From positions 1-64,000 of the forward strand of contig FLMG01001570.1 of assembly GCA_900088475.1 (NCBI GenBank): DNA of 64,000 bases, in the 5' to 3' direction. Both the position numbers and the translations under genes were made by a program. Below the pieces are notes generated by a model that was not told the DNA's origin, made no database searches, and was given only the letters and a program-made list of their open reading frames with translations. This stretch comes from Hyphochytrium catenoides. Its lineage: Eukaryota; Protista; Hyphochytriomycota. This document shows, one piece after another, positions 1,688-38,586 of this stretch; the stretch's first letter is position 1; every line of letters starts with the position of its first letter.

Positions 1688-1870
1688 TCACTTTCCTCCC
1701 TGTTGTTGTTGCTGGGCTGCTTTACGAGCAAGCTTATCCTGAAGTGCCTTAGCGTCTGCTTCCTTGCGCTGGAGAAAGCTCCCGCCTTTCTTGTTGTCTG
1801 CACCCTTGGTTTTCTTCGCCCTTGCTTGTGCCCGCGCGCGATCTCTCTCTCTCTGATCTCCTCTTGTCAT
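1688..1870 (-). CDS. SERF: SERF/4F5-family small EDRK-rich factor (60 aa)
   Basis: N-terminus MTRGDQRERDRARAQ and the motif QRKEADAKALQDK match the 4F5/SERF consensus (MTRGNQRELAR...DA.IMQ.K). Single exon. Confidence 0.9.
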   Translation of the reverse strand: MTRGDQRERDRARAQARAKKTKGADNKKGGSFLQRKEADAKALQDKLARKAAQQQQQGGK

Positions 1871-2914: not shown

Positions 2915-5900
2915 ATGTCGGACCTGATCGATAGCCCCAAGGCCAGTAGTCCTGCCATCGAGGATGTCAAACAGTCAGAAAAACAGCCAGAGCAACCCAT
3001 GCACAGCACAAAGAAGGATATGCATGAATCCGTTCAGGGGGAAAGACGATCCATGAGCTCAATGAAAGCCCAAGCGGACGCACCTGATATAAAGAGTCGG
3101 AAGAGCGAACCACTAATTAGTCCTCATCTCTCTATACCTCTCCCTTCAACATACCTTGACCCTGCCGGGAAGTGCATTCTTAACCTCCGAAAGCATGGTG
3201 TTCTGTATCGAGCCGTGGGCTCAAAGCTCAGGAAAGCGTACAGGAAGCAGTACCTCCAGTTAGGCCTGGATACTATTGGAGTGTTTGACTATGAGGCAGG
3301 TAAATTGACCTGTAACACTATCCAGGTGGTGTCACAGAAGTGCAGAGTTGAGATCAACTCCAAGAGCTCGTCCAATCTTAAGTTCACACTCTTCCATGCT
3401 GAGGGAGGGCATCGGGAGGAGGTGATGCAGTTCAAGGCAGCTTCACAGACAGAACGCGATGACTGGCTGAAGGCCTTTCAGCAGAGCATCAATGGCGAGC
3501 CCATTAACTTTCCGATACAAATCTCTCAGGAGGAGTTCCTCCAGCTGACCTCAGCCTTGTCTGAAGCCAAGACCCCCAAGTATCTCTGGGCCAGACCTCC
3601 TGAACTGCAGTGGGAGAAGGTTTCCGCTTCAGAGAAGTTCCATATCTCCCCGACTGGCTCTCCGCTAAGTGCCAGTGCCAAAGCTAGTAGCTTTAACATC
3701 AACGAGAACGCAGACACCTCCAAGACCGTTGGAGAGGAAGAAACACCAGCCAAGGCTCCTGAGGAAGGCAGTGGGGATACCCCGCCAGCTGCTAAGATGG
3801 AAGCGGAAGAAACCCGCCAACCTGACGTTGTCTCACCTAGTGTTCTAGACGACAACTCTCTTACCTCCTCTCAGACAATCTCCGCTCACAATGTGCAGGA
3901 CCCAGTAGACTCTGCCACACAAGTCGTACAAAGTGAGGTGGGGGAGGTCACATCTAGCTCGCGAGCGTCAACCGGGGACTCTTCCGAAAGTGGTAAACGA
4001 AGCTCTACTTCCTCTCAAAAGCAAGTGCCGAAGCCTCCCACCCTGACGTACAACCTTCGACGCTTTGGAGTGCACGTATTCTCAACCTTTTTCCAACCTG
4101 AAGTCCTCAGTGCAAGAGAAAGTTCGCCCTATGAAGTCGTCCTTGCGCTTAAGCCTCTTGACGTCCAAAAAGATGCACTGGACGGTCCTCAGTGTGAGAG
4201 GCAGACCCCTGTCGTGAACTTGGTCACGGAGCAGCTGCAACAAGGTGGCTTTACCGTCTCTAGATCAGAAGTAGCCTCTGCGCCACTCTGGAAGAGATTG
4301 CATGGGAATGATGAGACAAACACAAAGGAATATAAGCCCGACGCAATTCTCTTGAAGGTCCTACGCTTCTTCTCTTGTCTTTATAATTGCACGGTGGCAT
4401 ATTCTCTGCGTTCTTGCTCTTTCCGTACGGTCCTGCCATTGCTGGACCCCCTATCAATGTCCCTCTCTTTTCTCGCTCACTGTGCTGTCGGTGGATCTGC
4501 CAAACGTCAGTTTATAGTCTTAAGTTCCTAGCACTTGGAGCACTTAACTCTACACCGGTACAAGATCCACTAACCTGCTTTGGTTGTCTGCCTGTAATCA
4601 TCATTAGCTGAGCCTTGCCACGTCGGAGCTCCTTCGCGAGGCTGAAGTACAAAGACTGAGAAAGCGGTTGAAGGAGATGTCTACGTCCGGGGAGTACTAC
4701 GAAGAGTTCACTTCCACGAGGCGCCGACTATTTCTGGGCTTTGATGACGAGGGGAATATGCTAGAAACGTTTCTAGTTCCGGAAGAGAGGCAGCAGCTTA
4801 ACATGGGCAGGTAAGCAGAAGAGATCGAATAGAAGATGGCGCAGGACCGAACGGAGGGAGAGACCTGAAAAAGTTGATTTGGTTCGGAGTAAGCCTCAGA
4901 TAATAAGCCATACCTCTTTTTCTACGCAACAGACTCCACAGCCTTCCAGCTGGGGCGGTAGCGGCAGCTTTGACTCCTGAATCCAAGTCCAACAACACCG
5001 CACTGTTGCTGAAGTATCTTGAGAAGAAGGGCATCCTCCTCGCCAAATACAGCGTCCATGACTACAGTCAGAACCCTATAGGGACATCTTTGAGAGAACA
5101 CTGGCTACGGAGGAAACTCTTTGCCCCAACACCCTATTTGGACGTGAAGAAGGTCAGTGTTTGACTGAGCAAGAGTAGCTAAAACATCATGTCAAGCGGT
5201 CTTTTACTCCTGTGGCCCTTTGTCTATCCTATGTGATGACATTGAGGCCACTTACCTCAGGAGCTTGTTAACGTCTTCTTCTTGCTACCATCACAATGCC
5301 AATTGATGGTTTTCCGCTAGTGCCCCTACATTCCTACCATTAACTCGCTTATAATCCGCAACCATTGCCCTCTGTCATTTTCCTCCGCCAGTACTTTGGC
5401 GACCAAGTTGCCGTCTTTATCGACTGGGCAACCTACCATACCACCGCACTGAGCTTTCCAGCAATCCTCGGAGTGTGGGTCACTCTAAAGAGTGACACGA
5501 AAATGGCGCACATATTGGAACTTCTCTTCCCAGTGACGGTGATCGTCTGGACCTCCCTCTATATTTACTTCTGGAAGAGGCGAGCAGCCGCCAACAGATA
5601 CAAGTGGAACCTCGTCAGCCCTTCCTTAGAGGTAGATCACCTTGATCTGGCTACTTGCATCAACTGGTTTTGGCGACTCTTCTCTCCTTCTGACTTGTTT
5701 CTCGAGAACCTGGTTCTTCCAGAGCACTTAGAAAATCTTCACCTTCCTCTTTCTCTTAGCTCTTTGCCCTCTCCGGCTAACCCCTTTGCTCCTTGCCATC
5801 GTTCAGGGAGTGACTGAGCTAGAGATTGAGGAGGCTCGACTTCAGATAGAGGGGAACGGAGCCAGACACTTCAAGCCTCCCTTCATTACCCAGCAGCTGC

Positions 5901-7544
5901 CAAAGTATTTAGCCACAGCGCTGATATTTTTCTCACTATCTACACTGAATGTTGGACTGATTGGACTCGCTACCTATTTCAAGAATAGCCCTCCTTATAA
6001 TGAGGGCATGCTGAAGTTTGTCCCACTTGGAGGTACCCGGCGAGAATAGCCTCTAGCCAACTCAATGCGCATGTCCGTGTCTTTGACCCTGGCATCATTC
6101 CTCGAGTATCCCTCGTTTCGGCTCTTCTACGTCTATCTCTTTATATCTCTATCTTTTCTATGTTTCTCTGCACCGCTCTTTCTCTTTCTTGCTCTACCCT
6201 CCCACTCTCGCTTTCTCTTCGCCCCCTCTCTCTCTCATGCGCGGTCGTCTCTTTCTTTCTTTCTTTCTTACTTACTTCTCTCTTTCTCCCTCTCTCGTTC
6301 TTTCCATGCCGCCTGTCCTGTCCTACGTGCATTCCTAGGACAAGCACTATATATCGAGGTCGCATCTCTCATCTTTGACAATGTTGCCCGCTGGAATGTG
6401 GAGTGGATGAATCTTCGGTCCCATGAGGATTACGTTAACCAGTACATCATCAGGTCTGCCTCTCGCTCACCTTCTTCGCCTTGTCAATAACAAAAGGCGC
6501 CTATTAACTGCTGTTCATTACACCTTACTCTGCCATTAATCACTGTCTATTTGTTCGCTTCCTGCTCCTGCCTATGTCTTGCATTCGTTTATCTGAATGC
6601 CCCCACAAGAAAGCCTTCCTTGGTAATATGGTCCTGTCCTTGAGATCTCAGTGGTTCTTCCTCTTTCTGCAACATCGCTTTCGTCTTCCCCCAGAAGACT
6701 GTTCCGACACAATTCTTCAGTGGTAGCAGTATCTCAATTGCCCATCTAAGCCTAACTTTTGCTTTTCTTCCGCAGGAGAATCTTCTTCCTCTTTCCGACA
6801 AAATGTCTTCCTCTGTGGTACACAGCCTTCTTCCTGAAGGACGTCCCAATGCTCCGTGATCAGCTTCTTTCAATGGTCTTGACTGCTCAGATCATTGAAA
6901 TCGCTGGTCAGACCGTCTTCGCACACATCAAACACTGTGCTGTCACATTCAACTCTACTTACCAAAGGAGACAGCTCAGCACGCTGGCCGAGAGCCAGTT
7001 CCATTTAAAGAAGCTGGATCTCACCGCCAAGTACGCAGATAAAGTCCTTCAATTCGGATTCTTGACAATGTGGGCAGCTGCTTTCCCGTTGGGGTTCGCA
7101 CTGAACTTTATCGCCAACCTCCTAGACGTCCGTGCTCTGCCATATGCCTTGCTCTACACTTTCCGAAGACCGCTTGCCTCCAAGTGCTCCGGTATTGGGA
7201 TGTGGTATGGTGTCATTCTTGTGTCGTCAGTAATCGCCATCATTAACAACTCGGCATACATTTTGCTGACGGCCAAGCATCTGGATAACGTTTGGGACTC
7301 ACTCGGCGTCGATCGAACCTTGACAGTCTTTGGCGTGGAGCACTTGCTGCTTTTATTACACTTTGTGGTGGTGGCATACATTCCTCATGTCCCTAAGAAC
7401 GTGAGAAACCTCATTGCTCATGATATTGCGCTACGAAGGGTGATGATGAGAAAGTTTGTGGCCCAGAAGTGGGTGCAGATGAAGACGATTCTAGGGATGT
7501 CCTCTCCGCGAGGCCAAAGACCAAGAGGAGCCTCTCAAGAGTAA
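2915..7544 (+). CDS. Multi-exon anoctamin/TMEM16-family protein with N-terminal PH domain
   Basis: Exon 1 has a PH fold (RKHGVLYR...YRKQYLQL...FKAASQTERDDWLKAFQQSI). Spliced exons give ELLREAEVQRLRK, KYSVHD, LDVKK|YFGDQVAVFIDW, QFGFLTMWAAAFPL, RRPLASKCSGIGMW and EHLLLLLHFVV..IP.VP, all anoctamin signatures. Some internal exon boundaries are approximate. Confidence 0.88.
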
Positions 7545-37419: not shown

Positions 37420-38586
37420 ATGAAGCGCTATCGGGGGAATATGCTGAGGGTTTACGCCCAACGCCATCTTGCCCGGCGGTCGACTCCTCTCTTGTTCTTA
37501 GCGGCCTTCGTGATCTTCTTCTACATATCAGCTCCTAGGACAACCCATAATATGGCGATAGAGGATGTACCTACGCCGCTTAGCTCTAGAACGTTGCACG
37601 CTAGGCTTAGAACTGCCCAAATAGGAGTCCAGGACTGCAGCTCTTTCGAGCGCACGGTGGCTGCCGTCGCTGATCTGGATCGGAAGTCTAAAGTAGAGGG
37701 TACTGCTGGGCGCCTGATGTTCCATAGTTATTTCAAGATAGGGACTTTATCCAGAACCTGCAACAACGGCAATGTCGCCTCTTACAGCTTGCGGTGGGAC
37801 GAGAAGCAAGCCATGTTTTCTCATCAGAATGAAGCTGGTCGAGGCTTCGAACTAAGCGAGCTAGTGAAGTTTAATGACAAGCTCTACACCTTTGACGACC
37901 GTACGGGTATCGTCTATGAGGTTCTTCGAGGAGGTGACGGCAAATATGGTGCGGTTCCTCGCCACATCCTTTCGGAGGGAAATGGTTCTTCGTCTGACAA
38001 GGGCATGAAGATTGAATGGGCCACTGTCAAGGATGGCGAACTCTACGTTGGAAGTACGGGCAAGGACTTCACTGACGACGATGGCTACGTCGTCCACCGA
38101 AAAAACCTATGGATAACGCGTATTGACGTGTGGGGTAATGTTCAGACTGAGGACTGGAGTGAGCGGTATGATAGACTGAAGGAGGCCGTCGGAGTACCCT
38201 TCCCTGGCTACATCGTACATGAGGCCATTGAATGGAGCAGCATCCGGCAGCAATGGGTTATTCTACCTAGACGAGTTAGCTCCGAAGCCTACAACGAGGT
38301 TTATGACGAGTCAAGGGGATCCGACGTACTCATCCTTGCTAATGAAGACTTCACAGAATTTCAAGTGAAGCACATTGGTAAGCTCACCAACACGCGAGGC
38401 TTCTCTACCTTCAAGTTTGTCCCTGATACCAGTGACTCTGTAATCGTGGCGCTTAAGAGCGAAGAAAATGAAGCGCTAGGCACTCAGGCCACATATGCTA
38501 CAATTCTCGACATTGATAGCGGAGTTGAGTATGTTCCTGAGACTCTGATGGATTCACTGAAGTACGAGGGCATTGCCTTCATTTGA
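37420..38586 (+). CDS. CANT1: Calcium-activated nucleotidase / apyrase (CANT1/SHAPY family), type II membrane anchor, intronless
   Basis: VADLD, GRGFELSELV.FN.KLYTFDDRTG, KGMKIEWATVKDGELYVGSTGK, GYIVHEA, LPRR, RGFSTFKFVP, ALKSEE, KYEGIAFI. N-terminal hydrophobic anchor. Confidence 0.95.
   Translation: MKRYRGNMLRVYAQRHLARRSTPLLFLAAFVIFFYISAPRTTHNMAIEDVPTPLSSRTLHARLRTAQIGVQDCSSFERTVAAVADLDRKSKVEGTAGRLMFHSYFKIGTLSRTCNNGNVASYSLRWDEKQAMFSHQNEAGRGFELSELVKFNDKLYTFDDRTGIVYEVLRGGDGKYGAVPRHILSEGNGSSSDKGMKIEWATVKDGELYVGSTGKDFTDDDGYVVHRKNLWITRIDVWGNVQTEDWSERYDRLKEAVGVPFPGYIVHEAIEWSSIRQQWVILPRRVSSEAYNEVYDESRGSDVLILANEDFTEFQVKHIGKLTNTRGFSTFKFVPDTSDSVIVALKSEENEALGTQATYATILDIDSGVEYVPETLMDSLKYEGIAFI

Follow-up and report, generated by a model that had tools for sequence, protein, structure and literature searches.

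The locus at the beginning of contig FLMG01001570.1 of Hyphochytrium catenoides raises the question whether a PH domain and a TMEM16/anoctamin membrane body belong to one and the same protein, and which role such an N-terminal arm could play for a scramblase. We analyzed the window, i.e. the whole stretch of 64,000 nucleotides at the start of this contig. The region from 2915 to 7544 on the + strand can be read as one gene with seven exons encoding 1071 aa in the order PH domain, linker and TMEM16/anoctamin body, and this gene model is very probably correct as judged from the DNA.

The ATG at position 2915 starts a stop-free frame that reaches 4531, and no stop-free stretch in the 64-kb window is longer than the 560 codons that hold exon 1. 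The chance of 289 stop-free codons downstream of the PH domain was calculated to be about 2e-6. All six introns show GT-AG borders, and a frame check of the joined exons revealed 3216 nt with one stop, which is terminal. The in-frame splice of exon 1 to exon 2 proposed by the first-pass annotation was confirmed as a phase-0 GT-AG intron of 250 nt, and the junction reads DAILLK/LSLATSELL in phase (the slash marks the splice site). The last three bases of this intron, TAG, close the exon-2 frame upstream, and the first Met of exon 2 is codon 24; therefore the anoctamin frame can extend upstream only via splicing to exon 1. If intron 1 is read in the frame of exon 1 a stop is found at 4529-4531, and retention of the intron would result in a 538-aa ORF. 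A SERF-like gene is located on the opposite strand at 1688-1870. About 1 kb of intergenic DNA separates the two divergent genes, in agreement with a start at 2915. Neither the Rfam scan nor the tandem-repeat scan of this region yielded anything relevant. Homology searches were performed exon by exon, and the joined frame was used for frame, length, composition and hydropathy only. At the DNA level the PH-linker-anoctamin layout is real as far as it can be read from the sequence, with the fusion resting on the continuity of frame and splice phase.

Table 1. Predicted features of the H. catenoides locus. Positions refer to the 64-kb window.
Feature	Position	Strand	Description
Exon 1	2915..4357	+	481 codons, phase 0 at 3' end, single uninterrupted frame
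N-terminal head	2915..3175	+	aa 1-87; Ser/Pro/Lys-rich, without domain match
PH domain	3188..3490	+	aa 92-192; PF00169 plus PDB and Atlas neighbours
Acidic low-complexity linker	3491..4039	+	aa 193 to ~375; Ser/Glu/Pro/Thr-rich; without Pfam match
Globular-type segment	4040..4357	+	aa 376-481; Val/Leu-rich; composition switch
Intron 1	4358..4607	+	250 nt, GT(4358)...AG(4607), phase 0
Exon 2	4608..4810	+	67 codons + 2 nt; part of cytosolic N-terminal region; first Met = codon 24
Exon 3	4933..5152	+	1 nt + 73 codons; cytosolic region ahead of TM1
Exon 4	5392..5631	+	80 codons; Anoctamin domain begins (TM1-TM2); PF04547 positions 4-78, E 9.8e-15
Exon 5	5807..6032	+	75 codons + 1 nt; TM3 to start of TM4
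Exon 6	6339..6453	+	115 nt; TM4 to start of TM5; weak PF04547 match, positions 170-205
Exon 7	6776..7544	+	1 nt + 255 codons + TAA; TM5-TM10, remodelled Ca2+ site, basic C-terminal tail; PF04547 positions 210-458, E 4.1e-33

From its N- to its C-terminal end exon 1 encodes a disordered head, the PH domain, the acidic linker and a globular-type stretch of about 105 aa. The Pfam PH model PF00169 matched at profile positions 2-104 of 105 with E 3.5e-6 and 27.9 bits, which is 2.8 bits above the curated cutoff of 25.1, and three other models of the PH clan matched the same stretch more weakly. The domain had been placed at about aa 88-192 before; its identity was supported by this score, and the profile match covers aa 92-192. 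At the C-terminal end of the match the predicted helix carries the invariant Trp184 (ERDDW(184)LKAFQQSI), and in the PDB sequence search this helix aligns to the corresponding helix of TAPP1, centaurin-gamma1 and cytohesin-3. These three PH domains account for three of the four best PDB sequence matches of the PH region. The best one, the C-terminal PH domain of TAPP1 (PDB 1eaz), is non-significant (E 0.27), and the searches against representative proteins, by words and against the PDB produced no significant pairwise match to any PH domain. The ten best named Atlas clusters for exon 1 are all PH domains, although the match is weak (0.77). Residues 88-192 are globular in composition, unlike both flanks. 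An AlphaFold2 single-sequence model of the PH region reached a mean pLDDT of 43, and only a strand-strand-strand-helix arrangement in its second half fits a PH domain. The basic character noted earlier for the beta1-beta2 region was borne out: the stretch RKHGVLYRAVGSKLRKAYRKQY covers aa 92-113 (nt 3188-3253), aa 88-125 contain 8 basic (K/R) and 2 acidic residues in 38 aa, and the net charge of the PH domain is +7.

The segment that follows has the expected bias in composition (aa 193-384: S 17%, E 10%, P 9%, T 8%; net charge -10), which is strongest at aa 241-375. The description as a Ser/Glu/Pro-rich linker could be retained, but its length is nearer to 185 aa than to the 170 aa given previously. 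A tandem-repeat scan detected no tandem repeats in the linker. An FFAT-like motif (EEFLQLT) within this segment was rejected by eye as a poor match. The globular-type sequence at aa 376-481 presumably begins the N-terminal cytosolic domain of TMEM16, with exons 2 and 3 contributing its continuation; PDB sequence searches with aa 376-481, exon 2 and exon 3, and Pfam in the case of aa 376-481, provided no meaningful homology to this domain.

The membrane body was assigned by the PF04547 matches in exons 4 and 7 (Table 1). The PDB matches of exon 7 are TMEM16K, F and A, nhTMEM16 and afTMEM16, and the best solved relative is TMEM16K (PDB 5oc9) with E 1.7e-18 over TM5-TM10. Hydropathy analysis placed nine to ten membrane segments in the range of aa 630-1018; for aa 1-600 the maximum was 0.83, and no such segment was indicated. 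Since the first 600 aa contain no hydrophobic segment, and given the TMEM16 topology of the solved structures, the N-terminal part should be wholly cytosolic. The alignment to TMEM16K also revealed that the Ca2+ site is largely dismantled, in agreement with the loss claimed by the first-pass annotation. The exchanges are N444 to E, E448 to Q, D497 to K, E500 to D, E529 to D and D533 to L; Gln, Lys and Leu take the place of three of the five acidic ligands of TM6-TM8, and the set of five ligands is incomplete. By analogy with Ist2, which is a constitutively active scramblase that does not need Ca2+ (PMC12618243), we infer that the membrane body is a lipid scramblase with little or no Ca2+ dependence.

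The same note had also suggested that the protein may be phosphoinositide-gated, and the sequence lends no help to this idea. The beta2 arginine is a hallmark of PH domains that bind phosphoinositides with high affinity. The alignment with TAPP1 is weak overall (E 0.27), but it is well anchored locally and clear over beta2-beta3, where YFQLDENTIGYF stands against YLQLGLDTIGVF. In this alignment Gln112 occupies the place of the beta2 arginine just before the aromatic pair (YRKQYL in comparison to WKRRYF in TAPP1). The K-Xn-(K/R)-X-R signature is incomplete, with R110-K111-Q112 opposite to K-R-R; the TAPP1 domain has KRR before YF and contains the (K/R)-x-R part of the signature, whereas the H. 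catenoides protein has RKQ and lacks the key arginine. Because the signature arginine is Gln112, specific high-affinity binding of phosphoinositides is not predicted. Strong phosphoinositide binding is the exception among PH domains, and many of them bind proteins.

With exon 1 as query, phmmer gave zero hits at E<=0.001 among 1.84 billion representative proteins, and even the organism's own protein was not recovered. A word search with the 538-aa ORF, in which only aa 80-200 were scored (E<=10), returned 17 candidates, none of which scored. With exon 7 the word search identified eight anoctamin fragments, mostly from vertebrates and 31-40% identical; the length window for this 255-aa query excludes full-length proteins. 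Two metagenome scans, one with exon 7 and one with aa 80-481 of exon 1, detected no relatives, and a PDB sequence search with the whole of exon 1 gave no meaningful match. In the Atlas, exon 1 had PH clusters as neighbours and exon 7 had clusters with anoctamin only; no PH+Anoctamin cluster was among them. An orthologue of the protein did not emerge from any of these searches. A literature search covering PH together with anoctamin/TMEM16, oomycete anoctamins and domain architecture retrieved no PH-TMEM16 fusion. Occurrence of the combination elsewhere was probed by similarity to the N-terminus of this protein. Within the scope of this similarity search and the literature search we found no precedent for the layout. 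To our knowledge, characterised TMEM16 proteins in general are without a PH domain; this earlier statement held for all TMEM16 relatives that were matched or appear in the literature found, none of which is described with one.

Taken together, these data could be explained by an intracellular TMEM16K-like anoctamin to whose N-terminus a PH domain has been added, carried on a flexible acidic linker of about 185 aa as an arm for membrane targeting. To this statement as a whole we give about even credence; the targeting or tethering role of the arm, which is derived by analogy, is more tentative and somewhat doubtful when taken by itself. The basic PH domains, two per dimer, would act as membrane-targeting arms with affinity for anionic lipids, probably of low specificity; the target could be an apposed membrane or the one in which the protein itself resides. 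Lipid binding may then bring the scramblase to a certain zone of the membrane or a contact site, or keep it there. In function the arm would resemble the C-terminal lipid-binding tail of Ist2 or the phosphoinositide-binding N-terminal domain of TMEM16K, with a standard domain used for this purpose and positioned at the chain end opposite to the Ist2 tail.

Other readings concern the reality of the arm and its role. It seems highly improbable that the PH match is spurious and that the N-terminal 375 aa are nothing but a long disordered extension on an ordinary intracellular TMEM16 protein. The score near the cutoff (27.9 vs 25.1), the lack of significant PH matches in the pairwise searches and the low pLDDT, which leaves the fold unconfirmed, would fit this explanation; it is opposed by the end-to-end profile match including the invariant Trp, the three further PH-clan models on aa 92-192, the predominance of PH domains among the best matches in the PDB (three of four) and the best named Atlas clusters (ten of ten), and a globular composition that is confined to aa 88-192 and not shared by the flanks. 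That the fusion is not the main product is also very unlikely. An internal promoter could give rise to an anoctamin that lacks the PH domain and begins at one of two in-frame Met codons, Met295 in the linker or Met24 of exon 2. Retention of intron 1 could produce a separate soluble PH protein of 538 aa, and indeed the donor of this intron (AAG/GTCCTA) is weak and the retained intron ends the frame at 4531. However, the other donors of the gene are equally degenerate (GTCAGT, GTAGAT, GTACCC, GTCTGC), and 289 codons are open from the PH domain to the donor. Moreover, a PH-only protein would cut the globular-type region aa 376-481 in the middle of a domain, and a start in exon 2 would leave the anoctamin only about 120 aa before TM1.

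If the arm is real, it could also work in cis: the PH domain would bind a phosphoinositide in the membrane of the TMEM16 body itself and switch scrambling or conductance on or off, so that a lipid signal replaces the control by Ca2+. A dismantled Ca2+ site makes another regulator plausible, the PH domain is basic (net +7), and PI(4,5)P2 is required for the activation of TMEM16A (PMC9396059, PMC12912972). We nevertheless consider regulation in cis unlikely, since the signature arginine is Gln112 and a flexible linker of about 185 aa would be a poor relay from lipid binding to the pore. The incomplete lipid-binding signature, and the fact that many PH domains bind proteins, would agree with an adaptor that brings a binding partner to the scramblase; small GTPases, lipid-transfer proteins and the cytoskeleton would be examples. 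In addition, the linker of Ist2 recruits OSH6 (PMC12618243), and TMEM16K contacts Rab7 (PMC7335067). An adaptor function is still distinctly unlikely, because the strongly basic beta1-beta2 region (8 K/R in 38 aa) is typical of membrane-facing PH surfaces and no partner can be named.

More and more, TMEM16 scramblases are regarded as components of membrane contact sites; examples are Ist2 with OSH6 and TMEM16K at ER-endosome contacts, and both of these proteins bind lipids through sequences peculiar to themselves. A family member with a linker-borne PH domain would offer a clean and modular experiment of nature, with an arm that can be deleted, swapped or mutated, and it could show whether the placement of a scramblase beside another membrane is what matters. 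A more far-reaching version, in which this protist related to oomycetes independently invented a TMEM16-based contact-site tether consisting of a Ca2+-independent, constitutively active ER scramblase to which a disordered linker attaches a PH domain at the N-terminal end, is unlikely. If it were true, the protein would be an Ist2 turned end for end, and the coupling of scrambling and tethering would be a recurrent solution. If the PH domain is a weak or non-specific binder, or if the fusion is not the main transcript, the locus would be one more lineage-specific domain shuffle.

Proteins of the ORP5/ORP8 type are anchored in the ER and reach the plasma membrane with a PH domain. They resemble the layout proposed for the H. 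catenoides protein in coupling a membrane anchor to a PH domain for contact with anionic lipids of a second membrane; in contrast, their anchor is a single tail helix combined with a lipid-transfer domain and not a TMEM16 scramblase, and homology is limited to the PH fold. Among solved structures, that of TMEM16K (anoctamin-10), a human ER lipid scramblase, is closest to the membrane body. Phosphoinositides are bound by the cytosolic N-terminal part of TMEM16K, which acts at ER-endosome contacts (PMC7335067). Unlike the protein described here, TMEM16K has neither a PH domain nor a long linker, and it has kept the full acidic Ca2+ site, in which E448, D497 and D533 correspond to Q, K and L in H. 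catenoides. Ist2 is absent from the sequence matches of exon 7 at E<=0.001; a relation to it would therefore be analogy and not orthology. The earlier description of Ist2 as a tether with a long linker and a lipid-binding end is borne out by the literature, which shows that its extended C-terminus binds the plasma membrane (PMC12618243). Both proteins combine a TMEM16 body with a long disordered linker and a terminal element, which binds lipids in Ist2 and may do so in the H. catenoides protein, where the order is mirrored. The linker of Ist2 comprises about 340 aa, and the linker of the H. catenoides protein is about half as long. The two proteins also differ in the arm itself, which is a polybasic helix at the C-terminal end in Ist2 and a PH domain at the N-terminal end in the H. 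catenoides protein.

To establish the gene structure we combined three-frame translation with the inspection of splice sites. This resulted in a model with seven exons, in which exon 1 encodes an N-terminal module with a PH domain and a linker, and exons 2 to 7 encode the body of an anoctamin. The gene is of eukaryotic type with short, pyrimidine-rich GT-AG introns. A script check found GT-AG borders in all six introns and a joined frame of 3216 nt (1071 aa) with a single, terminal stop. Intron 5 is particularly rich in pyrimidines (76% on its coding strand, including long runs of CT/TTC) and contains one weak direct repeat of 23 nt; the remaining introns range from 61 to 69%, except for intron 2 with 38%.

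Coordinates of the PH-anoctamin gene and of other features in the window
Feature	Position	Strand	Remark
SERF-like ORF	1688-1870	-	60 aa, starts MTRGDQRERDRARAQ...
Exon 1	2915-4357	+	
First third of linker	3491-3700	+	aa 193-262
Intron 1	4358-4607	+	phase 0
Exon 2	4608-4810	+	
Exon 3	4933-5152	+	
Exon 4	5392-5631	+	
Exon 5	5807-6032	+	
Intron 5	6033-6338	+	
Repeat in intron 5	6188-6232		
Exon 6	6339-6453	+	
Exon 7	6776-7544	+	
C-terminal tail past TM10	7410-7541	+	last 45 aa
Apyrase ORF	37420-38586	+	single exon, 388 aa

Elsewhere in the window, the apyrase ORF is a clear match to PF06079 (E 2.5e-102).

The order PH domain, linker and anoctamin, described in the first-pass annotation, was borne out at the DNA level by Pfam matches, reading frame and splice phase. 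The ATG at 2915 opens a frame without a stop until 4531, and the corresponding stop-free stretch of 560 codons is the longest within the 64 kb. From the end of the PH domain to the donor 289 codons are open, for which the chance probability is about 2e-6. The first intron joins both parts in frame (DAILLK/LSLATSELL), as had been proposed. The frame of exon 2 is shut upstream by a TAG that includes the acceptor AG, and it has no Met before codon 24; splicing is therefore the only way in which the anoctamin frame can extend upstream. The donor of exon 1 (AAG/GTCCTA) is weak, yet not below the other donors of the gene. Upstream, a divergently oriented ORF is homologous to SERF (small EDRK-rich factor; PF04419 with 33.5 bits against a cutoff of 22.3), and the spacing of about 1 kb leaves room for a divergent promoter and agrees with a start at 2915. 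Separate or alternative transcripts could exist instead of one product, and a PH-less isoform could start at Met295 or within exon 2; a PH-only product would truncate the globular-type segment aa 376-481. The case for one gene rests on DNA, namely open frame, splice sites, composition and neighbour spacing, and makes a single gene with this domain order very probable.

Within exon 1, aa 92-192 match the PH profile PF00169 with 27.9 bits (cutoff 25.1, E 3.5e-6), which confirms the predicted domain. Pairwise searches with this region gave no significant match, as would be expected of a spurious profile hit; however, the alignment covers profile positions 2-104 of 105, and three further PH-clan models match the same stretch less strongly. 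The C-terminal helix has its invariant Trp (W184). PH domains made up three of the four best, non-significant PDB matches (TAPP1, E 0.27; centaurin-gamma1; cytohesin-3) and all of the ten best named Atlas clusters. An AlphaFold2 model run without alignment reached a pLDDT of 43, too low to confirm the fold structurally. We consider it very probable that aa 92-192 adopt the PH fold. The net charge of the domain is +7, and the basic stretch noticed earlier lies at aa 92-113.

The domain is followed by the expected Ser/Glu/Pro-rich linker (aa 193-384: S 17%, E 10%, P 9%, T 8%; net charge -10), in which a tandem-repeat scan was negative. Its first third (EEFLQLTSALSEAKTPKYLWARPPELQWEK) is less disordered than the remainder and may form a helix or a short motif packing on the PH domain. 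From about aa 376 the composition becomes globular, rich in Val and Leu, and continues to the exon-1 donor without a stop.

The anoctamin profile PF04547 matched exon 4 (positions 4-78, 9.8e-15) and exon 7 (210-458, 4.1e-33), with a further, weak match in exon 6 (170-205). For exon 7 the top solved relative was the ER scramblase TMEM16K (5oc9, E 1.7e-18), followed by TMEM16F, TMEM16A, nhTMEM16 and afTMEM16. Hydropathy indicated nine to ten membrane segments beyond aa 620 and none within aa 1-600; by TMEM16 family topology, PH domain, linker and N-terminal domain are all assigned to the cytosol. In the TMEM16K alignment the Ca2+ site reads N444 to E, E448 to Q, D497 to K, E500 to D, E529 to D and D533 to L. 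Only two of five acidic positions are still acidic and three are replaced (Q, K, L), in line with the proposed loss of the site. The C-terminal tail is basic (9 K/R versus 2 D/E). It may serve as a second element that faces the membrane, or belong to the C-terminal helix usual in TMEM16 proteins.

Relatives were searched with exon-sized queries one by one and judged by similarity rather than by a census of domain architectures. Exon 1 had no phmmer match at E<=0.001 among 1.84 billion representative proteins, and the PH region scored alone in a word search had none at E<=10. Within the length window of the query, exon 7 retrieved eight anoctamin fragments only (31-40% identical, mostly vertebrate). 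Metagenome scans with exon queries revealed no relatives, and no oomycete protein detectably similar to the N-terminal module was present in the collections searched. From the lack of matches to the exon queries we infer that H. catenoides and its near kin are absent from these collections.

An arginine preceding the aromatic pair of beta2 is a hallmark of high-affinity phosphoinositide binders (Akt, Btk, GRP1, TAPP1). In the TAPP1 alignment (WKRRYF opposite YRKQYL) this position is Gln112. Gating of the anoctamin in cis by a phosphoinositide bound to the PH domain, as the first-pass annotation had suggested, is a less likely alternative that the sequence does not support, and specific sensing is not expected. 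Because the domain is basic but its signature incomplete, weak or unspecific binding of anionic lipids, or a protein partner, would be expected instead. A PH domain binding protein rather than lipid is a less likely alternative. A targeting or tethering role of the PH domain is our preferred, though tentative, reading, to which we give somewhat less than an even chance. In such a role the body would be a scramblase of an internal membrane with little Ca2+ dependence, and each dimer would have a pair of basic PH domains on flexible arms, which might position the scramblase at an anionic membrane surface or hold it there.

A literature search for a PH-TMEM16 fusion found none, and the arrangement is real at the DNA level and, within the well-known TMEM16 family, apparently unprecedented. 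The reading as a scramblase with PH arms is based on analogy with Ist2 and TMEM16K. [quoted passage not shown] The function of TMEM16K depends on its N-terminal domain, by which endolysosomal phosphoinositides are bound at contacts between ER and endosomes (PMC7335067).
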